Origin: Neoechinorhynchus agilis
Taxonomy: Eukaryota > Animalia > Acanthocephala
Length of the DNA: 64,000 bases
NCBI GenBank assembly: GCA_051530055.1
Contig: CM121341.1
Coordinates: forward strand, 5,682,784 to 5,746,783
Direction of reading: 5' to 3'
The notes beneath the pieces are model-generated. The model saw only the letters and a program-made list of their open reading frames with translations. It was not told the DNA's origin and did not search any database. How positions within the stretch are numbered: the stretch's first letter is position 1; every line of letters begins with the position of its first letter. The translations under genes were made by a program, and so were the position numbers. This document shows, piece after piece, positions 6,570 to 53,270 of the stretch.

Positions 6570-8074
6570 TCATTTTGGTACGAATGCTCTGATTCTTTGA
6601 TAAGCCAAAGCCAATTCTCTTCTCAGTACTCTGCTTCTTAGAACATAGATATAAAAGTTCATTGCGTACGAAATGAAAGTTATTCGATGTAGGACATGTT
6701 TAAGAACTCGGAGTTTCTTGCTTTTGACCGCTAACTGGGATTTTCCCGTCACGACGAGAACTGTATCGACGAAATTGAGAACATGAAACGGCATATTAAC
6801 TGTAACATAAGTAAATGAGAGAATAATCAGCATTACGGTTGTGTTTCTATAGGCTCGTCGATAAATGCAGTCCCTTGTTGATTCGTTCGAATAGACCGTT
6901 GCTTTCCTTCTACCTCTTTTTCTAAGTGCATTCAGAATGGCCGTGGATCGCTCCTCCTCCTCAGAGGCGTTTTCATTGTGAAGAACTGCGACCGGCGTAC
7001 TGATAAGACCATGTTCACTTTGAATGGTCGCTCGTTTTAGAATTGAGATTATGATGAAATTCATTATAAGGATGCTCGTGAATGGTAAGACAAAAACGAA
7101 TATTGAGTCCGCCAATTGAAGTTTCATCTTGAGATCATCTCTTTTAAAGGTACATCTTTTGTTATTGGCTGAAAGACCGACGAAAATCAGGAAGGGAAAG
7201 TAGATAACGCATCCAACGGAGACTATTATCAATATTGCAATCAATGGACAACGCATCGTTAGTGATGCTGAGAAAAACGGAGACGCGATTGCAATCGCTC
7301 GTTGAAAAGTAAATGCAGTCGTCGTGTGGAACGATCGTTCTTGTCGCTTTGGTATTGCTAACTACCACCTTTTTTTAATAATGATCCACCCATTTTCGAA
7401 AATCAATTTAAACGTTTTTTTTTCTTCTACAAATGGACGTGCTGGACTTTATCGTATTTTGCCCGAGGTGCAAGTTGATTTTTGTCAGTTCACTCAGTCA
7501 AAAAAGAAGTGTCAAATGCTAATAACCGTCTAATTCAAGAACTTCAAGACTAGAGATGCGATATATGCACATAATCGAAAATGACAATTAGAGCTCTAAA
7601 GAGGTGCCATAAAAATTGGATTTGGCATTGGTAGTTAATTCGGTCGAAGCAAAGTTATTCTTAGATTTCTGGGCAACTAATTTGCGGACAAGTCTGAAAA
7701 AGCCAGCGACAAGAACGATACATTTAAACCGAAATAAAATTCGATAGTAGTGATATGAAAGTGCTCATTTGACATATGACTGGTCGGTTGAGGCAATTTA
7801 TGCCAAGTTTTGTGAGGAAAAACAAGAATAGAATTGCTAGATAAGCATTGTCGCTTATTGCCAGAAAAAGGAGAAATATGATAGACTGAGTTCGGAGGAC
7901 GTGTTTCTTTGTGAATATCGCGATCGACAGAGTATTGCCGGTTGAACCAAAGAGTACGATGGCTAGGATTGCGCCGGTATCTACGTGATCCCAGAATCTG
8001 ACTTGGGGATCCGCCGTGATTGTTGTTGTTGTTGTGGTTTCATTGTACATTGCAGTAAGCAGTTGCTTTGTCAT
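6570..8074 (-). CDS. Rhodopsin-class (family A) peptide-type GPCR, 2 exons
   Basis: TM1 GSTGNTLS, TM2 LAISD, ECL1 Cys, TM3 AFTFQRAIAIASP (DRY-equivalent QRA), TM5 VFVLPF, TM6 VNMPF, TM7 AMNFYIY. Exons 8074-7730 and 7331-6570, joined by an inferred GT-CG intron. Confidence 0.88.
7332..7729 (-). other. Inferred non-canonical GT...CG intron (398 nt) with a perfect 15-bp terminal stem
   Basis: The join gives NFIS|FHTTTAFTFQR with normal TM3 spacing. Arms at 7705-7719 and 7334-7348 are exact reverse complements. Confidence 0.75.
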
Positions 8075-9269
8075 TTCTATAAAGGTTAGATCGGTAGTAA
8101 GAGTTTCTCATGCGATCTTCAACATAGACATTTATATATATATAAAAAGACGCAAAATCCAAGGTTGATATCCAGTTTGATTATGATCCTGAAATTCGGA
8201 GAATAGTGAGAATTTCGATGTTACAGTAAGATTCTCCGTGGTGCTTAACGGGTTGCTAGCCTACAATTTGTGGAAAACGAGCAGGAAGTGTGAGTGGTTG
8301 GAGGAATTGTTAAGGACTTTTGATCCGTTTTTTGCTCTCGATTCCAGCAGACGGGTTTTTAATTTGCCAATGCTGGAGCTTTAACGGTATGCTGTGAAAC
8401 AGTATCAATTAGACGTTTCAGCAGAAGTCTCATAGCAATCTTCGAGACTTTAAAGGAGACAACGAGAACTTTATTGCACGCGAGATATAGTCAACTTTAT
8501 AAAATTAAAGGTGTCGGGCTCGAAATAATAGCATAGAAAATTTGTTAATCCACCATTTTTTAAAAAAAAAGCAACTACTAACGGAACACTGGCAATTAGT
8601 GGTTACCGGCGGTGATTTTCTTTTTTAAAGATCGTGATTAAAATAGCGTTTGAAACCCACACTCACGCGCCGCAACGACGTATGCTCATAAAACTCACAA
8701 TTAAATCGGAGACTCCACAAATAATATAATTGTAGTTGCAAAGGAACGATGGTGGAACCATTCTATCGATTTAAAAAGTATTCAGGCCCTCCTTATGGGC
8801 TATGAAAGCAACAAAAGATGCTGCCGGAATCTAATTGTTTAACACAAAGAAGCGTTCAATTAGTTTGATAATTAAATATAATTTCTGGCCTTTACTCTAA
8901 TTGGAATTAAAACTTTAAATTTTGAACAAAAATTCAGACTATTTGTCCTGGAAATCTGATTTGTGCTTTATCACCTACTTAAAATTCAATAATATATCGA
9001 GTTCGAAAAATATGGACACGTTCATTAAAAAAAACACGAAAAATTACGGCATACAAAAGTTTTTTTGTGGTATGAAATTCGAAACGTTGTTATTGCTCGA
9101 ATCACGGTTTACGGATTCGACTCATGTCTATTGGGATGAAATAAAAATGGATATTTTGCACACCTCTAATCTCCATGATGGAAGACTAAATTGGATAAAA
9201 TGCGATGTTGAAGCAAACACTTTGCCTGAAATTTATTAATATATATATTCATAACTCCTAGAAGGTTTC

Positions 9270-9420
9270 CTAGCACACTTTGAAATGCCGTAACCTAAAC
9301 ACTTTTTAAACTTTTGCATATAAAGGAGGTTTAAAAAGTGTTTAGGTTACAATATTTAGTAGCACACTTTGAAATGCCGTAACCTAAACACTTTTTAAAC
9401 CTCCTTTATAATCAAAAGTT
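9270..9420. repeat. Small mixed direct/inverted duplication
   Basis: tagcacactttgaaatgccgtaacctaaacactttttaaac occurs twice, with an inverted copy of part of it in between. Confidence 0.7.
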
Positions 9421-10015
9421 TGCTATACTTCTAAAAATGCGATTTTTTTGGCTTGAATTAAATTCTAAAAAACGTGAGTTTGTTCAATTTGTAAAATCAT
9501 TTTCCGGCACTACATTTAATAATCGTTTTCTAATCACATTGCTGAATAAGATCGTTTAATCATGAGTACTAATGTGCCACATCAAAAAAAATAAACCTGC
9601 AGGCACTTTGGGAATGCGTTTTAAAAAAGAACTCAAATCAAAGCGTCAACATTAGTTGACATTTTCCCTGGGCTACTTGATTAGGTTCAGCTTTTAAATC
9701 TGTAGGTAATGAGAGCTTGAATTGTAAAGATATTCTCCATTATAGTTTGTTCGGCCACGATCCAACGTCGTAAACACTTGCAAAAAAACAAGTGACTGAA
9801 GAAGGCCAACGAAAAGGCCGAAAATTTTCATATAATAAATTTAATTGATACAATCAGAGCTTGAATTGATTGTTGGTAATTCGGAATATCCCTTATTTGT
9901 AACCTTTAATTCAATCTTCTTGATGAGTGATAATGGAGAACAGAATTAACACGGCTCGTTTGGTTGTTGCGCGAATCATGAAATATTGACAATTTATGCA
10001 AAATTATTCTTAAGT

Positions 10016-10119
10016 TAATACGTAGGACCCTCGAAATCGAATTCCATCTCTCCTCAGGGCGGTTTAATCAGGTGGGAAAGAGGCCGCTCTGAGGAACTTC
10101 TCCTGTCGGAATAAGATTG
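10016..10119. repeat. About 105-bp dispersed repeat, copy 2
   Basis: Matches 1043-1149. Confidence 0.85.
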
Positions 10120-10432
10120 ATTAGAGCAATTGGGCCTAAGCCGGTGAAGGGGCCAAAAAATTACATCGATAAAAAAAGGAGAAATAAGGCTGTGAGTGAA
10201 AAAGCGCTTAGACATTTTATTTAGTTGGTCAGTAGAATTCAAAGATTGTTGGTTCTTTTGTCATGAAGACGACCTTTATTTTGATTTGAGGTTTCCAGTA
10301 GATGTTAGAGTAACAACGTTCAGTATTTCTATATTCCTAAATCAACAATCACATCCATTTAACTTATTAAGAGGTTTAAATGTTCAAGACGAGACATTAC
10401 CAACAATAAAACGTATTATAATGATCTATTTG

Positions 10433-10710
10433 AGATTTTTATCCAACGAAAAATGGGTGTTTTTTATTTCTTAATACTCCAAATTGTCGACGCCTTGCGT
10501 CTTCGTCAGGGAGCTTCCCTTCGGTGATCCGAAGGGAACAGCGTTGCCCTCCTCTGATCCCTTTCAGATCACCGAAGGGAAGCTCCCTGACGAAGACGCA
10601 AGGCGTCGACAATTTGGAGCATTAAGAAATAAAAAACACCCATTTTTCGTTGGATAAAAATCTGGAATAAAACATGAGGGTGTTGGGAAAAGAGGCTTTC
10701 CATAATATTA
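10433..10710. mobile_element. Palindromic MITE-like element (about 100-bp inverted arms)
   Basis: ctccaaattgtcgacgccttgcgtcttcgtcagggagcttcccttcggtgatc and its reverse complement flank a spacer of about 35 nt, and the arms extend outward. A diverged half-copy lies at 59398-59575. Confidence 0.8.
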
Positions 10711-11099
10711 TAACGATCGCAGAATTGCTTTCGAACGCGATCCGGTTCAAAAAATGGAGTTTTATCAGACGATTAAGTGTCACTTCTGTTAATTAGGAGC
10801 TTATTGGCCATTTTAAAATTATTGCCCGTCTATTTTTATAATTGATAATCGATTTATCGCCGATTAATTCTAAAATATGAAAATGTAATTTTTTAGGTGT
10901 CTTTTTTTCAATATGCAAACAACACAAGATGAGAGACACTTTAATTTCGAGAATATCGCAAATCTGTGGGATTATTTTACAAACGCCAAAATAATTGGCT
11001 TGATTACGTGGGAGTGTTAGCAATCGATTTTAATTTGCTATAAATTCAAAATTTTAGTGGATCTCAAAAATTACTATTCGACCTTCCCAATACCTGGTC

Positions 11100-11620
11100 A
11101 ATTGATTGTCTAAGAGGTTGAGACGAATCGCTGGCGATCCAAGGACAGGAGCATTTCTCCTACAAAAACATAAGTCTAACTTAGCAACGGTGAGGGAAGG
11201 CTGTATCTGTCCTTTCGGCCGTTACACCAGGACTGCAGTTGAGTGATCCAGAAAAACGGTGGTGTGAATGATCTCCAATTGTCGAAAAAATTGTTGTTAT
11301 GGTTTGTGGAGTCGATAAAAAAGCAATCGGCACGTTTAGAATGTCCATTCGGCCGTGTAAGGAATATTAAAATATCTATAAAAAAAGATTACGGGCTGCA
11401 CCACCCATAAAAATTCTAAACAATCGCAAAAAGCTTATCCAGGCTATAGTTGTGCTGAGGTGGTCAAGAGGACAAATGCTGCTGATTTCAGTTTGTCGAG
11501 TTAACGGGTTCAAAATCCCTATCAAAAGGACTCACTGACGAGTCCCGACTCCTCCTGGCGAGGTATCTGAGAATCCAGTGAGGCAATGAACGCAGACCAG
11601 CGCGTATATGGATAAATTAT
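11100..11620. repeat. Cluster of degenerate dispersed-repeat fragments (probable retroelement relics)
   Basis: 11100-11235 is homologous (inverted) to 59018-59140. 11341-11380 matches about 51665-51705. 11527-11600 matches about 51545-51660 and 58225-58300. Confidence 0.65.
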
Positions 11621-12534
11621 CTATCCTGAAATATTTGAGAATTGTTGGAGCTGATTAAGTTACGTTCAATAAAAAAAACCTTCGTAAAAACTTTGATAAT
11701 AATGCGATGGTAACTTGGAAAATTGCTTGTGGTGTTTTTAAAGTACTCAAATGAGACGAATGCTTCAAAATGGAACATTAGCGCATATTAATGCAAGCTT
11801 TGTATTGTTTTTTGAAAAGATGAATTAGAGTCACATAGAACTTCAATGTGTCTTTAATTGGAGTTCCGTACACTAACCGAGAAGATATCCAAATTATCAC
11901 GTGTCTTCAAAACGGCATCATTCGAATTATAAAGCGCCAGTGTTCTATTGTTCGTTCTTGAGATTTTTTCATCGACCGTTCATTTTAAGTAAAAAAATGT
12001 TTTATTGGACGGATTCTTAAGTTTCTAAGTGGAAATCAACATCACCAAAAAACCATTTTATCTTTCTTTTTTACTCTTTCAAAGTCAATGGAACAAAGGT
12101 ATTAGAAAAAAAAACCCCGTGAATATGTGTAGAGAACTTTTTAACTACCAAACGGACCATTTGAATTCGTGTTAAATGGCTCAAGTTACTTTGTGTCGTC
12201 AATGTAGACCACCGGAACAGTTTCCATTTGTGATTTTTGAGCTGGACAAGCTCAATAAGGAAAATAATATTGCATCGTGTGGTGGTCTCATCAAGAGTGA
12301 TGCAATTATTTAAAATTTAAAATAAACTCCCATGAGAATATCTGTGTCAGTTCTAGTATTATAAAATCCCCCTTTGGAATTGACAGAACCGGATATAGAT
12401 CACGAAACTATTAGTGAAATAGCAGTTTCAATTCACTTCGAAATGACCTGATTGTTTGGATATGCCATTTCACCGAACAACTATGAATGATGATTCAAGA
12501 AATTAAAAAATCGCATCTTGTATCTCAACAACGG

Positions 12535-13300
12535 CATTGCATTTCGGCTTCTCGACGTTAATCAAGAAAATCCTTTTATCGGGGTAAGGGAACTTTTAAG
12601 AGCGCCTTAGAAGGAATTCCAGAAAATAGAGATTTTCACTGGCTTTTCTAGGCGCGTTTGAGAAATCAGCGGCGAATGTATGTTGTAGAATTGTGATTTT
12701 TTCAGTTTCATGGTCAAAAAACTTATAGAACGCCTAAATCAAGGTACTTTTCCCTAGGGCAGAGCTTCTATTGGATAAAAATGACAAGAGCGAACTTCTC
12801 GACGTTAATCAAGAAAATCCTTTTATCGGGGTAAGGGAACTTTTAAGAGCGCCTTAGAAGGAATTCCAGAAAATAGAGATTTTCACTGGCTTTTCTAGGC
12901 GCGTTTGAGAAATCAGCGGCGAATGTATGTTGTAGAATTGTGATTTTTTCAGTTTCATGGTCAAAAAACTTATAGAACGCCTAAATCAAGGTACTTTTCC
13001 CTAGGGCAGAGCTTCTATTGGATAAAAATGACAAGAGCGAAAGCATCATTGCATTTCGGCTTCTCGACGTTAATCAAGAAAATCCTTTTATCGGGGTAAG
13101 GGAACTTTTAAGAGCGCCTTAGAAGGAATTCCAGAAAATAGAGATTTTCACTGGCTTTTCTAGGCGCGTTTGAGAAATCAGCGGCGAATGTATGTTGTAG
13201 AATTGTGATTTTTTCAGTTTCATGGTCAAAAAACTTATAGAACGCCTAAATCAAGGTACTTTTCCCTAGGGCAGAGCTTCTATTGGATAAAAATGACAAG
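12535..13300. repeat. Tandem array, about 250-265-bp unit x3
   Basis: cttctcgacgttaatcaag recurs at 12548, 12795 and 13060. Confidence 0.95.
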
Positions 13301-16009: not shown

Positions 16010-16112
16010 AGGGGAAATATTTCGAAAGAGGAGGTAACCTCGCCTCATCAGTCATCTAACAAAAATAATGAGGCGAGGTTACCTCCTCTTTCGAAATATT
16101 TCCCTATAAATC
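16010..16112. mobile_element. Hairpin mini-MITE (about 40-bp arms)
   Basis: gaaatatttcgaaagaggaggtaacctcgcctcat / atgaggcgaggttacctcctctttcgaaatatttc. Related to the terminal repeats at 42061-43030. Confidence 0.75.
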
Positions 16113-18996: not shown

Positions 18997-20910
18997 TCAA
19001 CTAGAGATCTTTGCCCTTATCGCAATTACATTAAAGTCATAAGTAGTGAATTGCGATCGAGTATGAGCCACGTGACCCGTTTGGGCTATGTTCTCATGGA
19101 CGCTATTTGCAATCCGTTTCGCATCTTCTTGGCTACCGCTTCCATTAGTCCAAACTATCAGAGTTCCGTCATCCTGTGCGCTGATTAAAATAGTCGGGAA
19201 CGAGCTATTCCAGGCGATTGCATTTGTGCAATAGAGCCTTGGATGAGGGATGTGAGTTCCAGAATTTGAATTCGCGAACGGATCACTGCTGGCAGATTGA
19301 TCAGGAGGAAGCTGCGGATTTCTGCGCTCCGATTGTGTCAGATCTGGGCCTGGGATAGGAGGCTGAAGGTAAAGAATTGGTGTAACGTGATTCGTGTTCC
19401 AGATTCTAATAATTCCATCTTCTGCTCCGCAAGCCACAAAATGGTCCGATATTCCACCAAACTGGGGTTGATGAATGAAGAGCGAGTGAAAAGAGTTGAC
19501 GAATCTATTTAGAAGATTCATTGTGGGATACGAGTAAAGATTCAGACAATCGGGTCTAGATGCAACGACTAATTTGGTTTCTGCTTTGTCCAAAGTAAAA
19601 GACACAATTAACCGGCGTTCGGCAACAATTGACTCAAGTCGATTGGCATCAAGATCTAGCGACCTCAAACGTCTTCCTCCATCAACAAAAAGAACAATAC
19701 CGGATAAAGTGACAAAGAGTTGGTTACACCGAATTCCAATGAATGCTTTAACTTGACCGGTATCGCTGTTGACCTTCACTAACTTTCCTTTCATACCACC
19801 AGCCGCAAAATGAAGATTGTCCGGATACCAACCAACTGAATGAAAAATATCGTCCTGATGACCAGGAGTCATAGCCATGTGCCATTCACATCGATCCATG
19901 TTCCAAATAAAAACCTTAGTTGACTTCTCGGTCCCTGCTACAGCAAATCCTCTAGAATCTCGTCTCCAGGCAATAGTACCAACTTGTTTTTCAACATCAG
20001 GAACATCCAAGTCAAATGAGTACTTTGGAACCAAACCCATTTTATTATTCTCACTACTTTCAAAGGTCCAAATACCAACCTTACCGTCTGAAGTACCAGT
20101 AGCAAGGAGTGTTCCATCTGGCGAGAATGAACAGCACCATATCTCACAGCCATAGGCATTGATAACTTGATATTGCCGATATGGATGCTTTTCCTTAGGG
20201 CAGACATGACTCATACTGGCTGCTTCACCAGCGGGTGGAATATAATCGAGATCAACATTCGATGGATGAAATGGACATCGAATTTCGTTGTAGAGAGCAG
20301 CACGACGGACGATATCATTTAATCGTCCGGCTGGAAGCATAGAACTACTCTCGGGCAGTATCCTTTCCAAATAGTTCACAACTGCTCGACGTCCACTCGC
20401 GATTTCGTCTTTAGTTAATGCCTCATTCTTCTCAATTAACACATAATACATATCACAAGTATGAGATTGGTCAAGATATTGATACTCGCTCGTATCAGCC
20501 ATTTCCGTCCGAATCCGCTCAACTGCCTCTGGATCAACGTCAGAACCACACATTTCAAGGATTTCTTGTCTCAGAACCCGTCTTAGAATCTTCTTTATAC
20601 ACAAAAGCGGCCGTGGAGGCGCAACATTTGATTTGAGTTCCTCATAAAGCTCAGTCTTCACTAATTGACGAACTGTATTCCAATCCCCGTTTAAAATACA
20701 CTCTCGTAAATCTGAAGTGCGTGGCTCTTCGATTACAATTCCAGTCTCTTTAGATAACGCCTCAAGGGTTCGCTTAAGTCCCGTGTCCAATAAATGAACT
20801 CCAATTATGCGATAAAGTTTCTCCTGATCCGCAGTCAGTTTTATACTGGTGGTTTTCATGTCCGATTTCTTGACTTGAGGTCCATTGGACGCGTCTGAAT
20901 CAGTGGCCAT
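18997..20910 (-). CDS. WDR26: WD repeat-containing protein 26 (GID7/CTLH E3 ligase subunit)
   Basis: LisH (EKLYRIIGVHLLDTGLKRTLEALSKETG), CTLH (DLRECILNGDWNTV), LPAGRL...RC..H segment, then WD40 repeats (EIWCCSFSPDGTLLATG, CGAEDGIIRIWN, SAQDDGTLIVW). The frame stays open upstream to about 21135. Confidence 0.85.
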   Translation of the reverse strand: MATDSDASNGPQVKKSDMKTTSIKLTADQEKLYRIIGVHLLDTGLKRTLEALSKETGIVIEEPRTSDLRECILNGDWNTVRQLVKTELYEELKSNVAPPRPLLCIKKILRRVLRQEILEMCGSDVDPEAVERIRTEMADTSEYQYLDQSHTCDMYYVLIEKNEALTKDEIASGRRAVVNYLERILPESSSMLPAGRLNDIVRRAALYNEIRCPFHPSNVDLDYIPPAGEAASMSHVCPKEKHPYRQYQVINAYGCEIWCCSFSPDGTLLATGTSDGKVGIWTFESSENNKMGLVPKYSFDLDVPDVEKQVGTIAWRRDSRGFAVAGTEKSTKVFIWNMDRCEWHMAMTPGHQDDIFHSVGWYPDNLHFAAGGMKGKLVKVNSDTGQVKAFIGIRCNQLFVTLSGIVLFVDGGRRLRSLDLDANRLESIVAERRLIVSFTLDKAETKLVVASRPDCLNLYSYPTMNLLNRFVNSFHSLFIHQPQFGGISDHFVACGAEDGIIRIWNTNHVTPILYLQPPIPGPDLTQSERRNPQLPPDQSASSDPFANSNSGTHIPHPRLYCTNAIAWNSSFPTILISAQDDGTLIVWTNGSGSQEDAKRIANSVHENIAQTGHVAHTRSQFTTYDFNVIAIRAKISS

Positions 20911-26361: not shown

Positions 26362-28341
26362 ATGATTGCGATTCATATGGGTAAGTTTTCGTTGTTTTCA
26401 ATGTTTTCAAAAGTTATACCAAAGGCGTTGGACTTTGTAAATCCGCCGCCCTCAGGACTCGAGATTCAAAGCTTTGTGATTCGGTCTGTGAAATGGCCGT
26501 ATCTCTGATTCGGAAAGGTGATTCCGCTGAAGAAGTAGTCACCGCGGCCATTACATTGCTTGAGAACGATCCGAGGATGAATGCGGGTGTTGGATCAGTG
26601 CTTAATATCGATGGTCAAGTCGAAGGCGATGCGACAATAATGAGTGAAGATAGTTTTGGAATGGTTGGAGCTGTACCGAGTTATTATTTTCAATAATATT
26701 TCATCCATAATCTCTCTCTTAATAGGATTTAAAAATCCGAGTAGGATTGCTCTTTCAATCCTAAAGAAACAAAGAGAAGGAACTCTTGAGTTTGGACGGC
26801 TAGTACCGAATTTTCTTGTAGGAGAAGGAGCGTTGCGATGGGCTGCTTTGCACAAAATGGACGAATGCAAACCAGACGAACTCATAACAAGTTGGCGTTT
26901 TCAGCTAATTCGAAAATTCGTTTCTCTCTTTAGAATCCACTCAAGCAAGCTTTAAAAAATATCGAGAGCAAATCGATGATGTGCTAAGAGTATCTACTTT
27001 CAAAAATGCCAAAAAGAGACGTCTTAGTGATGAAGAATGCAAAATGGATACAGTTGGAGCAGTGGCCATCGATCTTAAAGGAAACATGGCCTCAGGAGTC
27101 TCGAGTGGTGGAATCTTGTTGAAATTCCCAGGACGAATCGGCCAAGCTGCTGTTTATGGATGTGGATGCTGGACTACGCGTTAGTATTTCCCGGTGGTGG
27201 CCAAAAAATAATGTAAGAAACAAACCCCATTTCTCATGTTCTATCATTTTTGTTCACCAACGCGAATAGAGGCTTTAGGAACACGGATCAATTTTTATCT
27301 CAGAAACTGCGCAAAATAGGCTTTTTATAAAAGAAATAGCTATTGAGAATTCGGTTGGTTAGTTTAATTTGTTATTTAAGCCCAGGCCAAAGAGTTATCG
27401 CGCTAAAAAATGTTTGAATTGTTCACCTTTTTTTTATTGCAAAAAAAAATTAAACACAACATTGTGCCAAAATATTGTAGAATCAATAAACTAGTTTCAT
27501 ATTGTTTTTCAAAAAATGTTTCAAAGAATTCTGAACTGTTCAATCCTGGTTGCTTTCGGGCGAAAACAGTTGAATAAAACTTGGGAAGTAACCTTGATCA
27601 AACGAAGGCCTTACAAGATTGTGTGCCTTCGAAACCAATCGGAGATTTTAAAACCAAAATCATCATTTAATTTACGTTTTGACACTGATTTTAACAATTA
27701 TCGATTCAATTGCATGTAAATTCAAAACAACAATGAGTGCGTGAAATGTATGGCGAAACAATATAGAATTAAAAAAAATGACTTCTTAAAATCAGTTGAC
27801 ATCTCGGTTGGTGGTTATAAGTAGCGACCAAAATAAAAAAAGTTCTAAAAACCGGGAAATGCTCGATAAACGGCAAAAAAGTGAGGTTATAGCGACAAGT
27901 TGTTCCGGTAAGTGTTTTGTCATTTACGTCCATAATTCGCCTATAAACTCTAAGGAAGTGGTGAAATTCTAACTCAAACAAACTTTGCGAAAGCCTTTGC
28001 TGAGCAATGGTCACAGAATAGTTCACAAGGACTCGACACATGGATAGAACGCTCATTTCTTTGTTAGTTTCCGACTATTCTTCTTCAAACTCTTAGTGAA
28101 ATTAGTTAACCCGGACATTTATTTGGAGCGATCTAAACGCCACGTTGGCGTTATTGGTATCAGGAAAACCGAAGACGAAATGTGCGAACTTGTGATAGCA
28201 CATTCGACTCCTTATTTTTCAGTTGGATTCCGGGTAGCATCCGACGATCCGGATGAAGGAATGACAGTGCGTGCTTTAAATTCTAATTCGAATTACGTCT
28301 ACATATCGACAAGCTTACATAAAGTACCAAAATCTTTGTGA
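26362..28341 (+). CDS. TASP1: Threonine aspartase 1 (taspase-1), 7 exons
   Basis: IAIHMG, LENDPRMNAGVGS.LN.DG.VEGDATIM, NFLVGEGA..WA, the autocleavage motif MD|TVGAVAID, SSGGILLKFPGRIGQAAVYGCGCW and ATSCSGSGE. Five GT-AG introns plus one inferred GT-CG intron (27180-27865). Confidence 0.92.
27180..27865 (+). other. Inferred non-canonical GT...CG intron (686 nt) with a 13-bp terminal stem
   Basis: Strong gttagt donor. agtatttcccggt (27183-27195) pairs with accgggaaatgct (27851-27863), then cg. The phase matches, giving CWTT-H-KRQKSEVIATSCSG. Confidence 0.7.
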
Positions 28342-33696: not shown

Positions 33697-35078
33697 CTTC
33701 TCAATTTTAGTAATAATTCTAGAAATTATTGGAGACGTGGATATTCCAATTTTCGTTCCGACGACACTAAAACGAGTGTTCAAGTCATCTCTTCACCACT
33801 CGGAACCGTCGCAAGGACTCTAAAATAAGTAACGAAAACACCGGGGAAAGGATTCGCCAACGCACAATATTTGAAAATATCATTCAAACAAATAACTCAA
33901 GAACCATGATAGCTATCGCAAATCCGGATACAGATTTGGAATCAGCGCGTTAAGATGTACTAAATTAATTGTGTAGATATTCATTTAGGAATTAATTATG
34001 ATGGTGAACTGAAGTAAAGGAAATTATGAATATATTAATCAGAATTTTCGAACCAATGCGTTGGTCTTCTTCAGTGATCTGAAACACACATTAGTCCGGA
34101 TTGAGTTTCCACCCGTTCACCACAGCGTTGAAGGGTTGCTACGTTATCGGGATTGTCACATCTCGCCATTATTTCAGTGGCATCAAGATCAATTCGATGT
34201 TTGTTTTCTTTAACATGATGAACTAATGCTGAGTTGAGATCGGTCAAATTGCTGATGGCCCTCCTGATGTTATTGGTTTGTCACAATCGTTACAGGGTAT
34301 CCTACACACCCGGAGACCTCGTCAACCCTTCTGGGTCGGAACATGCCATCTAAGGTTCTCCTTTTTTTTGTTAAAAACCGTCACTTTTTTTCTGTGAGTC
34401 CTGCGGCTTAATGAGATTTTGCGTATTCTTGTTCCACTGATCGTCTACATAAGGGATCTCAATGAATCTTTTTTGGACTGCCTCGATATTCCGATTGTTC
34501 AATTTTTTCTATATTGAGTATTTCTCATCGTTTTTGCAATCTCCAAATTGTGTCAAGCTCATTCTTAAGAACATCTTCATTCGAGCAATATCTGTATACT
34601 CTCAAGAACAAGGACCTGCATCCTCGTGCTCGTTCTTTTTTTTATTAACGCTGTGGTGAACGGGTGGAAACTCAATCCGGACTAATGTGAGTTTCAGATC
34701 ACTGAAGAAGACCAACGCATTGGTCGAAAATTCTGATTAATATATTCATAATTTCCTTTACTTCAGTTCACCATCATAATTAATTCCTAAATGAATATCT
34801 ACACAATTAATTTAGTACATCTTAACGCGCTGATTCCAAATCTGTATCCGGATTTGCGATAGCTATCATGGTTCTTGAGTTATTTGTTTGAATGATATTT
34901 TCAAATATTGTGCGTTGGCGAATCCTTTCCCCGGTGTTTTCGTTACTCATTTTAGAGTCCTTGCGACGGTTCCGAGTGGTGAAGAGATGACTTGAACACT
35001 CGTTTTAGTGTCGTCGGGACGAAAATTGGAATATCCACGTCTCCAATAATTTCTAGAATTATTACTAAAATTGAGAAG
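33697..35078. repeat. Large inverted duplication: about 433-bp arms (33697-34129 / 34647-35078) with a 517-bp spacer
   Basis: The arms are reverse complements with only a few differences. Confidence 0.92.
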
Positions 35079-44288: not shown

Positions 44289-46370
44289 ATGAACATCAAT
44301 GGGAACGCATCGAGCGAACATCAAGGATCGTCAGAGAAAAGATTTAGTAAATCGATGGATGATACTCTTAATGTATGGGATTCTGCAATCAGATCAGGAG
44401 ACGCTAATATGGTTTCTAAGCTCATAAAGGGCGACGATGCCATAAATACAAATGAGTCCGTAATTTTCCATAGTCCATTAGGTCTTGCGGCTCAAATGGG
44501 AAACGCAGAAATCGTCCAATTAATATTAGCAGTATGTTTTGTTAACGTTCTAATTATTTTTTGCTATTTTTTTCGGATAACGTAAAGTGTGAGAAATGGG
44601 AAATAAAGGTCCAGGATTGTTCGAAAGGGTATATCGTCGATCGACCCTGGATAAGTAAATGAACGGTACTTCAACGACGAGACCGCTTTACATTGTGCTG
44701 TTAGAGGTGGAAATTTTGATGCCTGCAAAGCAATTCTCGATGCAGGTCAGATGCTTTACATTGAACACTTCAAGGTTTTGGTTTAGGAGCCAAAGTAAAT
44801 CATGGTGATGGAAATCGAGTAAGACCAATACATTTAGCCGCATCATCGGGTCGTCGTGATCTTATTGAACTATTGATAAATTACGGATCATATGTGAACG
44901 CTAAGGACGGGTAAATTCAAACCTGAATCATTTCGCTCTCCTTTTCTCGAATAGAAGCCGTAGCACACCTCTCCATCATGCAATCCTCAATGAACACATT
45001 GACGTGGCACGTTGGCTCGTATCAGTTGGCGCAAATGTCAATCATCAAGATGAGAATGGAAATACGCCTCTTATCCAAATAGTGTACATGGAAAGTGATC
45101 TTAATGGTCCAATTTCTCTCTCATGGTAGCTCTAATAAGAGATTAATTGGACCAATGAGTTTTGTCGGTTTTTACTCAAAAATGGAGCTAATCCAAATAT
45201 CTGCAATAATATGGGTACGCTCACTGTGTTATTTTGTGGTGTGAGAACCATTTTCTCTTCCATTAGTTTGATTATCTCAACGATATCATTCGCATAGGCA
45301 GAACACCATTGTCGATAGCTGTCTACCACAATTACAGCAACACGTTGATCGATATACTACTCGAATACAAAGCAGATGTATTGATTATCGATGTTACCAA
45401 TGATCGATATTCACTTCTGCACTATGCATGTCTTCACGGAAACACATCGCTCGTTCGTAAACTTCTCTTACATGGATGCCCTGTCAACCAAAAATCACTG
45501 TTTGGTGAAACGCCCGTTCATTTAGCTGTATCTCGGGGTTTCATCGATATAGTCCGAATTCTTATGACTTACGGTAATAATCAAATAACAATACTGCATA
45601 TACACTTCTCAATAGGATGTTCCGTGACTGATTGTGTGAAGAACACTTTCAATGATGTTTCCATCATCCATGCAGCCATTACAGCCAATTGCACTTTTGA
45701 AATCTTCAAACAAATGACAGATTTACTCATTGAGCAGGGTGCAAAACTTACAAACTTCGAAGGAATGCATTGCTCGAATGATGGAAGATGCAGATCACTC
45801 GTTATGAGTGCCCTTTTAACACACCGAGAAGACCGTGCCAAATATCTCATCCAGCTAGGAGCTCCCATCCATGATCCTGGAGATATAAGCAGTAATGTTT
45901 GGAGATATGGTGAGTGCAGGTTTGAAATTAAAGCCTTTAGCCAATTATTTCTATCCGTTAATTTTGATTGTACTTGTTATGTCTTTGGGAGATTTTTGGC
46001 CAATCTCAAACGACCAATCGAGCGCATTTTGAACACCCGACGAATCTAATTTTTTCCTTTGATTTGCTTAGCCTTTGCAACCAACCAAAAGGACATTATG
46101 GATCTCTGCTTCAAATGCGGTCTTAAACTTGAAGACGAACCGTGGATACTACATCTTCTGTTTCATATGGATGAATTTGAGATGACCGAGATGAACCAAG
46201 AAAGTTTTAGTCGATTTGTGCTTTACTATGCACGACCTCGACCATTGAAAGACATTTGTCGATTGAAACTGAGAAAACGAGTTCTATTGTCCACTTCTAG
46301 ATTGTATAAGACTTTAAGAGATTTCCGCCTTGGAGAACTCTTAATTGCTTATACGTTATTGAAGTACTAA
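44289..46370 (+). CDS. Ankyrin-repeat and SOCS-box protein (ASB-like), about 9 exons
   Basis: Multiple ankyrin repeats (ETALHCAVRGG, RPIHLAASSG, TPLHHAILNEH, GETPVHLAVSRG) and a C-terminal SOCS box PRPLKDICRLKLRKRV...LLIAYT. Confidence 0.85.
44609..44654 (+). other. Candidate non-canonical GT...AA intron (46 nt), hairpin-closed
   Basis: gtccagg / cctggat stem followed by aa. The join gives EIK|VNERYFNDETALH. A weak canonical alternative exists. Confidence 0.45.
45107..45157 (+). other. Inferred non-canonical GT...TG intron (51 nt) with terminal inverted repeat
   Basis: Contains in-frame stops. ggtccaatt / aattggacc inverted repeat flanked by an aat direct repeat. The join restores an ankyrin repeat, SDLN-E-FCRFLLKNGANPN. 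Confidence 0.7.
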
Positions 46371-46902
46371 GCCAAAATAAAAACAGTAGCCTAGGAACAA
46401 AACTTAGTTTCTTTTAAAGTGTGTATGGGCGCGGATCAAGCAACACATAAACTTCTCCATCGAGTTGAGAATACAATTCACAAATTAATCACATCAAATA
46501 TTAACCATTTCCAATACAGCATCCTTTTGATTTCTTTTTTTTTGTTTCCAATCGACTACTAAAAACGCGTTATTTTAAAGAAATCACAGAGTCCACTTTT
46601 TTTGATAGAAAAAATTCCAATTATAATTTTCATGCATTCATTGATGGGAAAATCGCAAAAAAAGGTATGTAGCGTTTTTCAAACCCCTAAAGGAATTATT
46701 ATGGTTAGAAGTCTACACCGCGGGTTAAATGATTATTTCGATCTTTGAAGTGACAAACTTGCGAAACAAACTGAGATGATGAACCTAAGGTGAGATGGTA
46801 CCTCCTCGTCAATTATTAGAACCACCAATGGTAAGCGTTTACGATTGAAATCTACACGCCGTCGCAATAGAGATCACAACAACTTTTAAAAAGAGAGAAA
46901 TA

Positions 46903-47205
46903 TCACTTCAATCGTGTGCATTTTGGGCAACTTTCAATGGATCGCAATTGTTGTTGTTGTTGATGATGGTTTAAGGTCCCCGTGACTGCATCATAGACCA
47001 TCCAAATGAAGATTCCGATTCCTAAGACATCAAACATGATTCCAACCAAAGTGATCCGTACAATGCCACATATCATTCCGGTCAAAGTGAGCAATAATCC
47101 TGCACTTGATAGGAGTGCCGATAAATGAGGAACTAGAGAAGATAAGTCCGCATTCGGAAAAGTGATTAGACCTTGAGGAGCCGAACTTCCAAAGCGAAAT
47201 GGCAT
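46903..47205 (-). CDS. Small two-TM protein of unknown function
   Basis: Hydrophobic ALLSSAGLLLTLTGMICGIV and TLVGIMFDVLGIGIFIWMVY segments followed by poly-Q. Confidence 0.45.
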   Translation of the reverse strand: MPFRFGSSAPQGLITFPNADLSSLVPHLSALLSSAGLLLTLTGMICGIVRITLVGIMFDVLGIGIFIWMVYDAVTGTLNHHQQQQQLRSIESCPKCTRLK

Positions 47206-47654
47206 TTTTAACAAAGAATCCGCACACCAACTCGTTTTTTTAATCAAGTCCACACAAAAAAAATTCATTTTGAAACTTGCTTTGACATTAATGAGTTTAA
47301 TGTGTTCGAGAGAAAGTTGACGAAACCGTGAGTTTCCAATAGTTTTTTTTTGAAGAACTCACTTGCAAACACGGAAATTGGAACCTTTAATATTCTGCTA
47401 GAATGTTCTGAAGGAGTATCTCTTCTGAATCATAATTTCAGCCTTCTAATCAGATTTCATGCTTCTCCGGACGAAATGATAAATTGGTTTAGATGCAAAT
47501 AGAAATGGTAATGTAATTTTGTCATCGAACAACTATGCAGAAACTCATTGATGTCATTATGATTGAGAAGATCGACCACCATAAAGATCAAATATGGCAC
47601 GAATGCTTTCGACCATCACAAATTCAGCCATGTAAAATAGACAAACCACATACC

Positions 47655-48275
47655 TTATTTTATGAGGCTAAATTTAGCACCAGTTAATCCTACATTCTTA
47701 TCATCACACCATTCTCGTGGAAATAGTTTAAGGTCTTCAATAAGACCACGTCGAAGAACTTTTACTTTTAGCATTGAATCTTTTGCCGTTCTAAACATAT
47801 TAACGGCATCTACAAGACTATTAAAGGTGCTCGCGTTAAGACTTTCGCCCAACTCAACGATTTTGTCGCCTAAACGAAGACCAGCTTCATCGGCTGGCGA
47901 CGAAGGACGGACGTCGTCAACAATAAGAAATGGTTTCGGTCGAGGAACGCTTGTAATTTCCGAATTCGATGATTTTAACAAAGAAAAATATCGATGCATC
48001 CTAGTCTCCAGCTGATTCATAAGTTCCTGGTGATCATTTCGGAGTCGGGCAATCGCATTTCGGGCTGTCCGAACAGCTACAATGTCCATACCTTGTTTGG
48101 GATACCCTTCTTCGTCTACAAGTGACGTTGTATCGTCTGTGCCGTTATCGGCTAATATTTGAAAGTTTGATTTAATTGAAAGTTCAATGGTTTCCTTTTT
48201 GAAATCAAGAGCTTTAATTTCAGATAGAAGAGATTCCATTTCGCTAGTCAAAGTAGGCGGCGGTTGTGATGACAT
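47655..48275 (-). CDS. PSMD9: 26S proteasome assembly chaperone p27/Nas2 (PDZ)
   Basis: SLVDEEGYP..DIVAVRTARNAIARLRNDH, then a PDZ domain with V.PSSPADEAGLRLGDKIVE and LFPREW. Confidence 0.92.
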   Translation of the reverse strand: MSSQPPPTLTSEMESLLSEIKALDFKKETIELSIKSNFQILADNGTDDTTSLVDEEGYPKQGMDIVAVRTARNAIARLRNDHQELMNQLETRMHRYFSLLKSSNSEITSVPRPKPFLIVDDVRPSSPADEAGLRLGDKIVELGESLNASTFNSLVDAVNMFRTAKDSMLKVKVLRRGLIEDLKLFPREWCDDKNVGLTGAKFSLIK

Positions 48276-48529
48276 CTTAAAATCTGAAATGTAACTCAGA
48301 AAAAATTCTTAAATTCATCTTTATCGACGAAAATTCTTTTAAGCTCTTTTTTCGTTTCCGTGGCAAAAACCATAACAAACCTCTCTCGTTTTCTCTCAGT
48401 CGGCCTAATCCGTAGTAACTTGGCGTAAATAACATTATTGTTCGTCGTCGTCTATGTGAGTGCACACAAAGGATTCCTTTCACCTAACCTCCTAGTTTCT
48501 ACGAACTCCTTTCCAAAAAAAGGCGACAA

Positions 48530-48712
48530 ATGCTATCCAACATCGTCTACTGTCTTCTGGCCATCTTGATGCCTCCGCTGGCATTATATCTAGACAGAGA
48601 ATCCTGCGATAAACATGTAGTTATCAATATTCTTCTTACCATTCTCGGATTCGTCCCTGGTGTGATTCACGCAATCTTCATGATTTGTTGTTGTGCTCCC
48701 TATGATGAGTAG
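48530..48712 (+). CDS. Pmp3/YqaE (UPF0057) small membrane protein
   Basis: LLAILMPPLALYL...INILLTILGFVPGVIHAIF family signature. Confidence 0.9.
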   Translation: MLSNIVYCLLAILMPPLALYLDRESCDKHVVINILLTILGFVPGVIHAIFMICCCAPYDE

Positions 48713-48895
48713 AATCGAACAAAATAAATTTAGTTGTCTTTAGCTGCTTGAACCAGATGATTCATCCAGAAAATGACAACGATTTCAAATTGTTTTCTAG
48801 GCTAAAGTCCTTAGAACAGTAGTGAGCACAATCTCGTGTTTTTTTTGTTAAATTCTCTGACACAATACAAACATTTGCGCGCTGGTGAATGGTGA

Positions 48896-51800
48896 TCACA
48901 ACAAGTACTCGAGTTCATATCTTCTATAAGTATTTTTTTCGTCGTCGTCAACACTTGGATAAGCAGCAACGAGAGCATCTTGTCCTCCGATATAAAGAGT
49001 ATTATAGACTTTCCAATAGACATCCCGGACTCTACGTGCGGGATGGAATAATCCCTGAAGAGTGTAAGAAAGAACTACTCCATGTCCTAATCCCATTCGA
49101 AATCCTTCTATGGTTGAAATGAACGCTTGAATCACATGGGGACTATTTTCAAAGATGTTCGGCCAAACAAAGTTAAGAAGATGAACAAGAGCATCCTCAC
49201 AACCATGACCAAACACACCAAGTGCCATATGACCAACGGCACTCATTGCAGTCTGCCTATGAACCAAATCACGGTCCATGAGTGCATCCTCCAACAGTGG
49301 TGAAACTGCATAAATGTAGTCTTTACTCATCTCACCAATGTATTCAAACATGAACGAAAGTGCTTTTAGAACACCGTTTTGAACATTGAGTTCGGGCACT
49401 CGGTATTCGTTCATGAGGCCTGGAAGCACCGTGAATGGTGAACAAGTCTCAGCCACAATGGCGATCGCCACCGTTGTGCAAACACGAAGTTGTCTTTCTT
49501 GAACTTTTAAATTGTTCAAAAGTGTCGCTAAAACGTCGTATGGACCTATCGCTTTTGCAATGTATCCAAACGTATTGATGGCCGCACGTCTTATTGCCTT
49601 CTTATGAGCTTTGAGCAATTCAAGGAGTTCAAAACAAATCCGCATCCATTCTCGAGACACGACATACTCTGCACCAAGATCGGCTATTCGACCAACTAAA
49701 TCAATACAATTCTCTTGCACTTTTTCATGACGATTCTTTAGAATTGGCGTTAGACGAGGAAGCAAATCCTTTATCGGAGGCGTCATCTCCTGAACTCCTA
49801 CTGCGTTCACTATTGCTTTTAGAGCACCAAGTATACTGCCCAAAACCTCAGGATACTCTTCGCCAAGGTATTCGTACAAAACCAAACCCAAATGATTAAT
49901 GAGCTTTGTCTCATCACATACTCGCATAACGCCAGCGATTTTAGCTATCAAGTCCGCTGCTTGCTGACGAACTTTAGCTGTCTTGTTGTTTAAACGCCAA
50001 AGAATAGTGCCACATATCTGGGGCAAATAGGGTTTTGTACGAATCGAGAGTGTGTTTACTACAGCTCCAAATCCGTTCAACATAACGACGTCTTCGGTCG
50101 TCTGCTCTTGAAATGCATACCGACATGGAGGTCACTGTCGACTCGGCCCAATTGACAAATGACCTCCATTCGTTTCTTACAAAATTCCATCGATCAAAAG
50201 TTCTTCGAGTCTTGAATCAATATCAGTAGCTCCCAAATTCACGAGTATATTTTCAATAGTTTCCATAACCATTTTTCGATACTGCTCGCTATCCTCTTTA
50301 AGGTCATCTACAATCCTGAGGATAATTTCTGAAGAACCAACTTTATTCGCAATCTCAACGGTAGTATCGACTAGTTGTCTATAATTTCGCCGATCCATAG
50401 CCATTCTCTGATTCCAGAAATACTTAAAGAACTGAGGCAAGATCTCGGACCGTATATATTGAGCCTCAACACCGTCGGTACCACAACATTGCTTTACGAC
50501 CTTTAAAACAATCTTCTTCATTTCCTCATCTGGGCTTTGAAATTCCCTGATTAAAATGAGCATAACTTCACGCGTATAATAGTTTGCATATTCAGCATCC
50601 ATCAATGGAATCAAGAAACCGATTGCTTTCAAAAACGCGGCTAAACCCTTTCCCCTGTGCTGTTTAATTCCTTTCCATAAAGGTTTTAGTACACTATCAA
50701 AAGATTCTATTCCATAAGGTGTAGCAGCTTCGGCCAACGCAGCTAAGGCCAACGCAGTGATTGTACGTACTTTTTGCTGTTCATCTTCTAGGCCGTGTTC
50801 AATGATTTCAACGAGTTGACGCAGGTAAGGTAGAACTGCACAACCCATTAGGATACTTATTTGCTGAACAATCTTAATTCCAGTATGACGAGCTTGCCAT
50901 GACTTTTTGCTTTTACAAACAGCTTTCAGGAATGGGAGAAGTGCGGGAATTCCTAATGCCGAAGCTACGACGGCGAATGCTCGAGCAGTTGTATTTCGAA
51001 CGTACTCGTCCAAGTTATCAATATCAGGACGCATTGTGGATATCATTGTGGCTAAACCAGCCGCCTTGGCCAAATTCGAGATGATTTCGCGACCTTCGAC
51101 ACGAGCATAATAATCCTCGTCAATCAGTAGAGGCTCAATTACTACCAGGATTTTGTGGACGTACGGTCGAACAAGGTCGTCAAGCTTGTATAAAATCCGA
51201 TCGATTACTTTAACGAGCAAATGACGCTCTTGATCCTCGAGAGTTGGTGACATTAACAACGGCAAAATCTGGTTCAACATTGGACCTGCACCCAACTCAC
51301 GAGCCTTGTCCGTGATCTGACGAAGTGCACTTTTACGCATTGGTGGAGTGCCATTTTTTATCTTCAACAAAAGTTTCATTATCTTATTCAATGATACCAG
51401 CAATAGAATTTGTTTTTAAATGAAGAAATGAAAAAAAAGGAATTTTACAAGTATGGAAACTTTAACGTTTGCGATAGATTTTTTCTCTCCATACAAGGCC
51501 GACGGTCCATCGAGGAGACGAAATAATGCGTGTTGGAGGGAAGAGGAAACTCACCAATGAGAGTCCCGCCTCCTCCTGGGGAGGTATCTGAGAATCGGGA
51601 GGGATTCTTACAAACTCTTTTACCGTACGGTCTTGGGGGGCATTGAGCGCAGACCAGACAGCGGGTGTCCATTCGGCCGTGTATGGAATAATAAAATATC
51701 TATCAAAAGACTACCGACTGAGCCACATATAATTTTTTTTAACGTTTGTGTTTTTTTCGTCTAAGAGAAATCGCTTCCTTCTCATTTAGAATGCTATCGT

Positions 51801-53270
51801 TTATAATAATAAAAAATGCTAAAAGCAATAGATTTTAGCCGTGCTGGTACCAATACTACGCTCCTTTTGTTCTTCGGCACTGAGGCTATCTTCGTCCACG
51901 TCCTGAAGAAGTTTGTCGAAATACTGTAAATCATCTGGTTTGAGCAATGGGAGATTTCCTCCTTTTGGCATAAACTCCTGTATGGCACCAGCAATTCCTG
52001 AAGCGATGCCGCCACTACTGGCTGCGGATTGCGAGTATCCATCCGGGGTTTGCATCCTAAATCCGCCCATGACTGACATGGGTGTCGGGGTCGAGATGAG
52101 TTTACGTGCCGGCGTTCTGATTGGCACATATCCTGCGGGTGGTTTAAGGACCTTGTATCCTGGAGGAAACATAGCTTCAAGTTCTTCATCGCTCACTGGT
52201 CGATTCCTTTCATCGATCTCCTTTTCCCATCGATAAGCTTGCATTTGTTCTGGAGTCATGACAAGGTGTCCGGGCGTTGGTGTCGTAAGCAATCGAGCTG
52301 CAGTGCCTAGAGGAGTAGCCGCACCGAACGCACTGAATCCATGAGTGCTCGTAGTAGATTCAGCTGAACCAGTAGGCGTTTCGTCCCATCGTGACCGTCG
52401 CTTTTGCTTGGCGGCACTTGTTGTTAGATCTTCGTCAGCGACGGACCCTCGAGGAGTATCCGCCCAACCACTAGGCGTTGATTCTTGCTCGCTACGTTCA
52501 ACGGGAGTCTCATCCCATCTATTTCGTCGCTGAATGGAAGCCTTTACAGGTGTTGTGTCCGAAGATAAAGCCCCAACTAAAGGAGTAGGAGCCCAGTCCA
52601 CAACTTGGGACGAACCACCAGGAGTTGTTCTGCCTGGTGTCTCTGCATACTTGGAATCGACCTGATCCCACCGGCCACGCCTCTTTCGCTCCTCAATCTT
52701 CTCATTGACCTTTTTTCGCACTTCTACCTGTTCCTTCACCAAATTCTGTTCCTTCATAACGTCCACATACGTCCGATTGGATACTGAAGGCGTTCTTCCA
52801 CCATCAGCAAACGGATCCACTCGCTCTGGAGACATCGCTAGCTTACGCCGTCGCTTCTGGTACTCGCTTTCTCGATCACATATCTTAGACGGCCGGGTGT
52901 CGGAAAATGGATCCGTTTCTTCGCCCTTACCGACCATATCTTTTAACATTGCCTGAGGAATTGAATAACTCTTAAGACCTCCACCAAGAGATGCCGTCTT
53001 TGCTGCCTGCTCGATCAATCCGGTGTCCTCGTCGTCGTCCTCGTCGTCATGGTCAGCATTAGGCTCAATTGAGCTTACGTATTCGTCATTGGAGCGAGTA
53101 CCGTATAAGTGCGAATCAAACTCACCCTCGGACGTAAGAGCGATTCCGACAGACGATACCACCGAACGAGTATCTAAACAACACAAAGAATGAAAATAAA
53201 CAATAAACATGAATTTACCCGATATTGGCTTGGCCGTTGACGCTTGTGATCCATCATCTGAAGAGGGCAT
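48896..53270 (-). CDS. SF3B1: Splicing factor 3B subunit 1, 4 exons (53270-53219, 53173-51857, 51384-50181, 50120-48896)
   Basis: RWDETP ULM motifs, p14-binding region and HEAT repeats ([51 protein letters not shown]). Intron 1 is GT-AG (45 nt); introns 2 and 3 have no GT-AG solution. Confidence 0.97.
50121..50180 (-). other. Inferred non-canonical GT...CG intron (60 nt) in SF3B1, hairpin-closed
   Basis: gtaaga donor with an in-frame TAA immediately inside. The join restores IDGIL|[10 protein letters not shown]. atggaggtca / tgacctccat perfect 10-bp stem. Confidence 0.85.
51385..51856 (-). other. Inferred non-canonical intron (472 nt; GT...TA, or the equivalent AG...AT register) in SF3B1
   Basis: The join restores EEQKER|[14 protein letters not shown] direct repeat at the ends. 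tggtaccagca / tgctggtatca 11-bp stem with one G-U pair. Confidence 0.75.

Follow-up and report, generated by a model that had tools for sequence, protein, structure and literature searches.

Evidence for hairpin-bounded, non-GT-AG introns in protein-coding genes of the acanthocephalan Neoechinorhynchus agilis

Introduction

Non-canonical introns of the U2 type that derive from miniature inverted-repeat transposable elements (MITEs) have been described in an animal, the larvacean Fritillaria borealis (Henriet et al. 2019; Soo et al. 2026, PMC13326754; reviewed in PMC11282704). The nonconventional introns of euglenids (PMC11282704, PMC12501133, PMC11170887) and the introner elements of Amoebophrya and other dinoflagellates (PMC7789003) are further systems in which intron ends depart from GT-AG. 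Here, we report on a 64,000-nucleotide (nt) stretch of Neoechinorhynchus agilis DNA (assembly GCA_051530055.1, contig CM121341.1, positions 5,682,784 to 5,746,783), referred to below as the window, in which six hairpin-bounded inserts interrupt the coding sequences of four genes: a G protein-coupled receptor (GPCR) gene, TASP1, an ankyrin-SOCS gene, and SF3B1. The window has a G+C content of ∼39% and is animal DNA with very short GT-AG introns. All six interruptions had been proposed in a preliminary description of this DNA and are borne out here. Three of the inserts are removed exactly at the RNA level and are kept in independent genomic DNA, and it is very probable that RNA-level, hairpin-defined non-GT-AG introns exist in this animal. 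No paper on non-canonical introns in Acanthocephala or Rotifera was found in a literature search, and the word intron is absent from two N. agilis papers and from the P. laevis genome paper.

Results

Public runs containing this sequence comprise many single-sample RNA runs of one study together with Hi-C and whole-genome sequencing (WGS) DNA, a set in keeping with the N. agilis data of PMC12690905. The published N. agilis RNA data are poly-A selected and directional and come from single whole worms (PMC12690905); the RNA runs used here would be poly-A selected as well, provided that their study is the RNA-seq project of that paper. RNA and DNA joints were compared across positions 44410 to 50400 of the window using RNA contigs of runs X2, X10, and X3 and raw WGS reads of run X8. 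The latter is DNA from another sample and covers each of the three inserts in this stretch at ∼12 to 18×; joints were listed when present in at least 3 reads. Six ordinary GT-AG introns of the ankyrin-SOCS gene (41 to 162 nt, one with two 3′ sites) are spliced out in the RNA contigs, and their absence from the X2, X10, and X3 contigs confirms these runs as RNA. Across the stretch, three of nine introns are non-canonical.

SF3B1 lies on the minus strand (∼53327 to 48896) and carries just two interruptions, neither of them canonical, and no GT-AG intron at all. Its three open pieces are collinear with human SF3B1 to the residue, with piece 1 ending ...EEQKER and piece 2 ending ...LIDGIL. Alignment to the human protein fixes both removals much as they had first been proposed: the DGIL/YAFQ junction requires the loss of 60 nt between TTG and TAT, and the QKER/KIMK junction, where no residue is missing, that of 472 nt between CGT and AAG. 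The 60-nt insert opens with an in-frame TAA, and its removal is also seen directly in RNA. The joint 50117->50178 skips exactly 60 nt, with a slide of 3, in X2, X10, and X3 (depth of 283, 204, and 282 across the three runs). In every RNA run, depth in the 200-nt bin around the insert is exactly 0.70 of that in its flanks, which corresponds to zero contig coverage of the insert itself. The same joint was not seen in the X8 DNA reads at the threshold of at least 3 reads. A GTA direct repeat leaves four equivalent registers for this insert (GT..CG, TA..GG, AA..GT, and AG..TA), and its stem is 10 bp long, or 13 bp counting one bulge, within a fold of −29.7 kcal/mol.

The 472-nt SF3B1 insert has TA on both sides, which allows the registers TA..AA, AG..AT, and GT..TA, and its terminal stem is 10 bp, one G-U pair included. 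Contigs X2-11 and X3-15 both stop 1209 nt past the 60-nt joint. If the unlisted remainder of these contigs is colinear with the window, their ends fall at 51386, the predicted boundary of the insert, and give indirect support to its removal; the shared ends would then be an assembly-graph branch point where spliced and unspliced paths part. The RNA runs hold 0.92 to 0.94 of sampled words, and ∼0.87 would be expected, as an estimate, were both SF3B1 inserts wholly absent. Given this share, some retained or repeat-derived insert sequence may be present in the RNA. The gene calls on record for 48896 to 53327 are separate 387- and 395-amino-acid (aa) products, split at an insert. The protein retains at least one RWDET-type motif, which resembles a U2AF-binding ULM. 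As a separate observation, the 472-nt insert (51385 to 51857) shares two rearranged pieces with repeats at 11342 to 11575.

In the ankyrin-SOCS gene, X2, X10, and X3 all have the RNA joint 45101->45156, which leaves out 54 nt (slide of 1), and the record coordinates of contig X3-12 leave no extra letters between its two sides. This insert (45102 to 45155 or 45103 to 45156) has two registers, TA..AA and AA..AT, and is almost all one hairpin, with a stem of 10 bp plus 5 bp and a fold of −26.6 kcal/mol. The other insert of this gene is flanked by a TAAA direct repeat (slide of 4), giving five registers (TA..AG, AA..GT, AA..TA, AG..AA, and GG..AA), and has a terminal duplex of −19.3 kcal/mol. Its removal is seen only in X3, in a contig that runs from 44531 through the 16 nt of 44588 to 44603 to 44656 onward, so that the joint 44603->44656 takes out 52 nt. 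Contigs of X2 and X10 keep 44588 to 44743 contiguous, although the GT-AG introns on both sides are spliced out, and the 52-nt insert is therefore removed inefficiently or late. Where it is retained, it leads into a stop codon. An internal GT (44609)...AG (44655) pair would define a normal-sized intron of 47 nt and create a stop, and is not the junction seen. Neither ankyrin-SOCS joint was seen in the X8 DNA reads at the threshold of at least 3 reads. The protein across the two RNA joints reads ...EINERYF... and ...SDLEFCRF....

The RNA thus changes two boundaries of the preliminary description. An intron of 51 nt at 45107 to 45157 (GT..TG) had been proposed where 54 nt are removed, and one of 46 nt at 44609 to 44654 (GT..AA) where the X3 contig removes 52 nt with no register starting in GT. 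Junction reading, which had been put forward as a check, gave removal of the 60- and 54-nt inserts in three runs; for the 52-nt insert, it gave removal in X3 and retention in X2 and X10. Checking raw DNA for base errors had a clear outcome: X8 reads match the assembly at all tested insert ends apart from one polymorphism, excluding wrong bases at the tested acceptors. That polymorphism is an A>G change at 44606 (10 of 15 X8 reads), within the TAAA repeat that borders the 52-nt insert. Coordinates of the inserts and of the RNA-verified introns are given in Table 1.

Table 1. Positions of the six inserts, a microexon, and the ordinary introns of the ankyrin-SOCS gene within the window
Feature	Position(s)	Strand	Basis
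GPCR TM3 insert, 398 nt	7328..7732	−	Pfam 7tm_1 positions and duplex
TASP1 insert, ∼683-686 nt	27180..27866	+	In-frame TAG at 27182, duplex, loop length
16-nt microexon	44588..44603	+	Between canonical 56-nt intron and 52-nt insert; X3 joint
Ankyrin-SOCS 52-nt hairpin insert	44604..44659	+	X3 RNA contig joint
Ankyrin-SOCS 54-nt hairpin insert	45102..45156	+	RNA joint in X2, X10, X3
RNA-verified GT-AG introns, ankyrin-SOCS	44532-44587, 44744-44784, 44910-44953, 45214-45265 (or -45296), 45573-45614, 45909-46070	+	RNA joints
SF3B1 60-nt hairpin insert	50118..50180	−	Human alignment and RNA joint
SF3B1 472-nt insert	51385..51858	−	Human alignment; RNA contig ends at predicted boundary, if colinear

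The remaining two inserts were assessed from protein homology and terminal pairing. In the GPCR gene, a 15-bp perfect stem pairs 7705 to 7719 with 7334 to 7348 (duplex, −17.4 kcal/mol). The upstream piece of the Pfam 7tm_1 match stops at profile position 72 and the downstream piece resumes at 73; because the two positions abut only when exactly 398 nt are removed, this is the length to be taken out. The available registers are GT..CG (three equivalents via a TCG repeat), TA..TC, and AA..CC, and the annotated protein is a 185-aa fragment (6570 to 7256). An interruption of the hairpin type is very likely here. In TASP1, a 13-bp terminal stem pairs 27183 to 27195 with 27851 to 27863 (duplex, −22.0 kcal/mol), and the registers GT..CG, TA..TC, and AG..CG are all in frame. 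The annotated TASP1 protein (P0002) comprises 229 aa (26400 to 27184) and ends ...CWTTR at the TAG inside the insert. The loop between the GCGCW and G.GE motifs would have 16 or 17 residues under hairpin-type solutions and ∼31 under GT-AG solutions. Among TASP1 homologues, it has 14 to 19 residues in 59 of 95 (17 in human), and ∼12% have at least 30. An interruption of the hairpin type is likely for TASP1 also. Within this insert, ∼100 nt at 27566 to 27673 duplicate, with up to 95% identity, the unit of an array of palindromic repeats at 3300 to 4100.

To describe what the six inserts share, terminal pairing was scored as the best duplex between the first 22 and the last 22 nt, with random same-length segments of the window as background. 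Terminal duplexes of −17.4 to −22.5 kcal/mol were obtained for all six, compared with a mean of −5.5 for random segments, of which ≤0.2% reach the insert values, and with −1.3 to −6.4 kcal/mol for seven RNA-verified GT-AG introns of the ankyrin-SOCS gene. T makes up 0.08 to 0.44 of the last 25 nt of the inserts versus 0.32 to 0.60 in the canonical introns, whose 3′ ends are T-rich. Stems begin 1 to 11 nt from the 5′ end and 1 to 7 nt from the 3′ end and are unrelated in sequence. The terminal inverted repeats, the lack of a pyrimidine tract, and the sharing of structure rather than sequence that had been noted initially are in agreement with these figures. In folds that include the flanks, the helix reaches the junctions and in two cases passes through them, with small internal loops of 5×3 or 1×1. 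Repeat pieces occur inside the two largest inserts only (TASP1 and SF3B1 472 nt), as judged by a window-wide comparison.

Four inserts are exactly defined, and their junctions are ambiguous because direct repeats of 1 to 4 nt (GTA, TA, TAAA, and T; 3, 2, 4, and 1 nt) flank them. These lengths sum to 10 versus 3.0 expected (P = 0.006). Just two registers are available to all four: one in which the intron starts with TA, and one of the form t/A...T/r (slashes marking the cuts), which yields AA..GT, AG..AT, AA..GT, and AA..AT. TAA or TAG is the sole 5′ boundary motif available to all six inserts, read as TA... or t/AR...; TASP1 carries TAG and the GPCR gene TAA, and each has an in-frame TA..TC solution. 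The three RNA joints are other than GT-AG, GC-AG, or AT-AC, and a canonical end is available only as AG in one of the five registers of the 52-nt insert. A GT donor had been assigned to every insert, but GT is a possible register in just two of the four exact cases, and the proposed GT-CG class gives way to the two common registers named above. The threefold TCG ending and the U at −3 that went with this class depend on the predicted TASP1 and GPCR boundaries, for which in-frame GT-AG alternatives had not been considered.

Signatures of other processing systems were sought in the inserts. Their minimum-energy folds contain neither a bulge-helix-bulge (two 3-nt bulges and a 4-bp helix) nor IRE1-type twin 7-nt loops with CNG/CNGN. 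Rfam at gathering thresholds returned no ribozyme or other RNA family in the window. The 5′ ends show no U12-type consensus (RTATCCTT, with branch site TCCTTAAC) in any register by eye, no motif search having been made.

Several further features of these genes and their surroundings were recorded. The ankyrin-SOCS GT-AG intron at 45214 to 45296 has alternative 3′ splice sites: X3 uses the one that gives a length of 52 nt, and X2 and X10 use the one that gives 83 nt. In exon 3 of SF3B1, 18 X8 reads diverge before 49627 and 16 after 49660; the 34 nt from 49627 to 49660 are doubled in depth, and half of the reads in them have C>T at 49643. The pattern resembles a polymorphic insertion, flanked by a 34-bp duplication, within the coding sequence of this exon. 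Neither the reference nor the RNA contigs contain it, and it could be an insert acquired recently. A structural variant, perhaps a foldback or an insertion, lies at 46689 to 46785 in the spacer that follows the ankyrin-SOCS gene; in X8 it is marked by opposite-strand joints (46719->46785, in 32 reads) and by loose ends at 46689, 46693, and 46765. The loose-end sequences of the X8 polymorphisms were searched in the window and gave nothing above chance.

Additional candidates were considered across the window and rejected. A scan for terminal stems of 8 bp whose excision reconnects open reading frames returned 395 hits, was far too noisy, and was dropped. One of its hits, a hairpin at 19019 to 19057 in a WD40 gene, reflects an ordinary GT-AG intron. 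The inverted repeat at 33697 to 35078 does not interrupt TGS1, whose methyltransferase domain is already complete before the repeat begins; this 1.4-kb element, with inverted arms of 355 nt (plus 78 nt) that are 99% complementary, directly follows the gene, which encodes a TGS1-like cap methyltransferase. No clear pattern emerged from the TA flanks of the window's other palindromic repeats. A search of protein and contig records for transcript-derived sequences spanning the GPCR, TASP1, and 472-nt SF3B1 junctions returned only gene calls of the genome itself.

Discussion

The data support a second kind of intron beside the short GT-AG introns of this genome, with paired termini, no 3′ AG, and no pyrimidine tract. 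Such introns would be transposon-like insertions in coding exons that are taken out of the RNA as non-canonical introns. Each insert has TAA or TAG at its 5′ boundary and is closed by its own terminal helix of 7 to 15 bp, and loss of the insert plus one repeat copy leaves an uninterrupted reading frame in the four exactly defined cases. The terminal helix would bring the two cut sites together and could define them in place of GT, AG, and a pyrimidine tract.

In anatomy, the inserts sit between the Fritillaria and euglenid systems, and the earlier view that they have no precedent in animals is to be revised, as they match the reviewed introns of both (PMC11282704, PMC12501133). Shared with F. 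borealis are an animal host, ends other than GT-AG, terminal inverted repeats, duplication-like border repeats, and coexistence with GT-AG introns; in addition, one of the registers (AG..AT, AA..AT) has A at +1, like the Fritillaria AG-AT class. However, introns of F. borealis are mostly AG-AC or AG-AT and follow an exonic TAC, whereas the inserts described here have a TAA or TAG boundary and no single dinucleotide pair. Three of the four exact cases admit an AG.. start, but their 3′ ends differ, and there is no exonic TAC on the sense strand. Non-canonical introns make up >90% in F. borealis, whereas most introns in the window are GT-AG by the count of the preliminary description. Spliceosome dependence and U2AF paralogues have been shown for F. 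borealis, while the inserts here are known from sequence and RNA joints. Fritillaria introns belong to repeated MITE families; for the inserts here, the comparison covered the 64-kb window, within which their termini are unique.

Like the nonconventional introns of euglenids (PMC11282704, PMC12501133, PMC11170887), the inserts have variable borders, no pyrimidine tract, and inverted repeats that join the ends. Their borders are likewise ambiguous from short direct repeats, with Y/R cuts possible at both ends, and each has intron-unique sequences. That contigs of X2 and X10 still contain the 52-nt insert adds a hint of removal after conventional introns, as in euglenids. Euglenids are, however, protists rather than animals, and their introns carry CAG/CTG at +4 to +6 and −8 to −6, whereas stems here differ in both sequence and start. 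The introner elements of Amoebophrya and other dinoflagellates also combine non-canonical ends with terminal inverted repeats, there with target-site duplications of 3 to 5 nt, but they form multicopy families whose inverted-repeat motifs are conserved, and no U1 snRNA was found in Amoebophrya (PMC7789003).

Several points weigh against reading these inserts as a class of RNA-removed introns. A direct RNA joint is available for three of the six (SF3B1 60 nt and ankyrin-SOCS 52 and 54 nt), and the RNA evidence consists of assembled contigs, in which minor forms are hidden and which are without strand, lariat, or circle information. The predicted 472-nt SF3B1 junction draws on homology and on contig ends at the boundary. 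No terminal dinucleotide pair is common to all inserts, which is awkward for a spliceosomal mechanism, and the insert termini have no other copy within the 64-kb window, so that a transposon family is hypothetical. An exhaustive listing gives in-frame, stop-free GT-AG solutions for TASP1 and the GPCR gene. Moreover, a hairpin with direct repeats is the classic context of template-switch artefacts of reverse transcriptase, and the inserts present exactly this context. Template switching over hairpins with flanking microhomology, or wrong bases in the assembly, could be invoked, and the 52-nt removal is found in one contig of one run only. Such an artefact is nevertheless very improbable. At the insert ends, the DNA reads of the other sample match the assembly (44606 excepted). 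For the 60-nt insert, the joined form is the sole contig form in three libraries, at depths of >200, which template switching cannot account for. Conserved protein sequence is restored to the residue by the joined forms, whereas unspliced forms carry stops in an essential gene, SF3B1. Excision at the DNA level has also been raised, such that the inserts would be cut from somatic DNA and the RNA would merely mirror it. In Paramecium, internal eliminated sequences (IESs) have TA at both boundaries and are removed precisely from DNA, leaving one TA. The TA-flanked inserts with paired ends, whose precise removal leaves one repeat copy, resemble them. Unlike IESs, these inserts are kept by the DNA and lost by the RNA: the X8 reads span three of them with no skipping joint at the threshold of 3 reads, the joints occur in three RNA runs, and RNA contigs lack the 60-nt insert entirely. 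As the 52-nt insert is retained in some RNA contigs, it is transcribed, and removal from DNA is scarcely credible. For TASP1, and with less likelihood for the GPCR gene, an ordinary GT-AG intron with an incidental stem is unlikely but deserves more weight. It would run from a donor at 27184 to an exon 2 starting at 27822, 27825, or 27843 in TASP1, and, in the GPCR gene, from a donor at 7729 to an acceptor that precedes the one first proposed by 15 or 30 nt. These solutions are in frame and free of stops, and the TASP1 acceptor region (∼27800 to 27824) is, by reading, about as T-rich as verified canonical ones. The TASP1 solution would, however, give a loop longer than in most homologues and make the 3′ arm of a −22 kcal/mol stem coding by chance, and it is unused by the annotated model (BRAKER with RNA-seq hints, if the assembly is that of PMC12690905). 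The GPCR solution puts RQERS or LAIPKRQERS into transmembrane helix 3 (TM3), extra residues that do not align.

Concerning the machinery that removes the inserts, our best guess, which could equally prove wrong, is the major spliceosome with relaxed end recognition, acting in the register t/AR...T/r. This register places A at +1, like the AG-AT introns of Fritillaria. The spliceosomal nature of the Fritillaria introns (PMC13326754), the GTAAGA in one insert, and the RWDET-type motif in SF3B1 speak for it. A less probable but serious competitor is a euglenid-like route independent of the spliceosome, in which a structure-recognizing endonuclease would cleave the two strands at the helix base, a ligase would join the exons, and the insert would be released as a full-length circle or a linear piece. 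This would sit well with the lack of common terminal dinucleotides and of a pyrimidine tract, with inserts that are nearly all hairpin, such as the 54-nt one, with stem sequences unique to each insert, and with the unused GT...AG pair inside the 52-nt insert. Junctions blurred by direct repeats are found in Euglena agilis (PMC12501133), and the 52-nt insert outlasts its GT-AG neighbors in the manner of late euglenid removal (PMC11282704). Opposed to this are folds without a 3-4-3 bulge-helix-bulge or IRE1-type twin loops, the good GTAAGA 5′ site that the SF3B1 60-nt insert has in one register, and the fact that the sole animal precedent is spliceosomal. No such endonuclease-ligase machinery for intron removal is known in animals. 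A structure-guided, spliceosome-independent pathway of RNA excision and ligation in an animal, with the terminal helix recognized and cut at its base, is accordingly a tentative proposal that we consider rather doubtful.

Were that pathway real, it would be a functional convergence with the removal of nonconventional introns in euglenids, and hairpin insertions could settle in coding exons, even in those of SF3B1. This core splicing factor itself bears only hairpin-type introns, two in number. The inserts also have consequences for annotation, as gene finders that assume GT-AG split or truncate genes here (SF3B1, TASP1, and the GPCR gene in the window). Low BUSCO scores of N. agilis have been put down mostly to gene loss (PMC12690905, PMC12256650) and may in part be an annotation artefact. 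Beyond this genome, Syndermata/Acanthocephala would be a second, independent animal lineage, after larvacean tunicates, that tolerates non-GT-AG insertions in its genes, and it offers a comparative test of how splice-site definition moves from sequence to structure.

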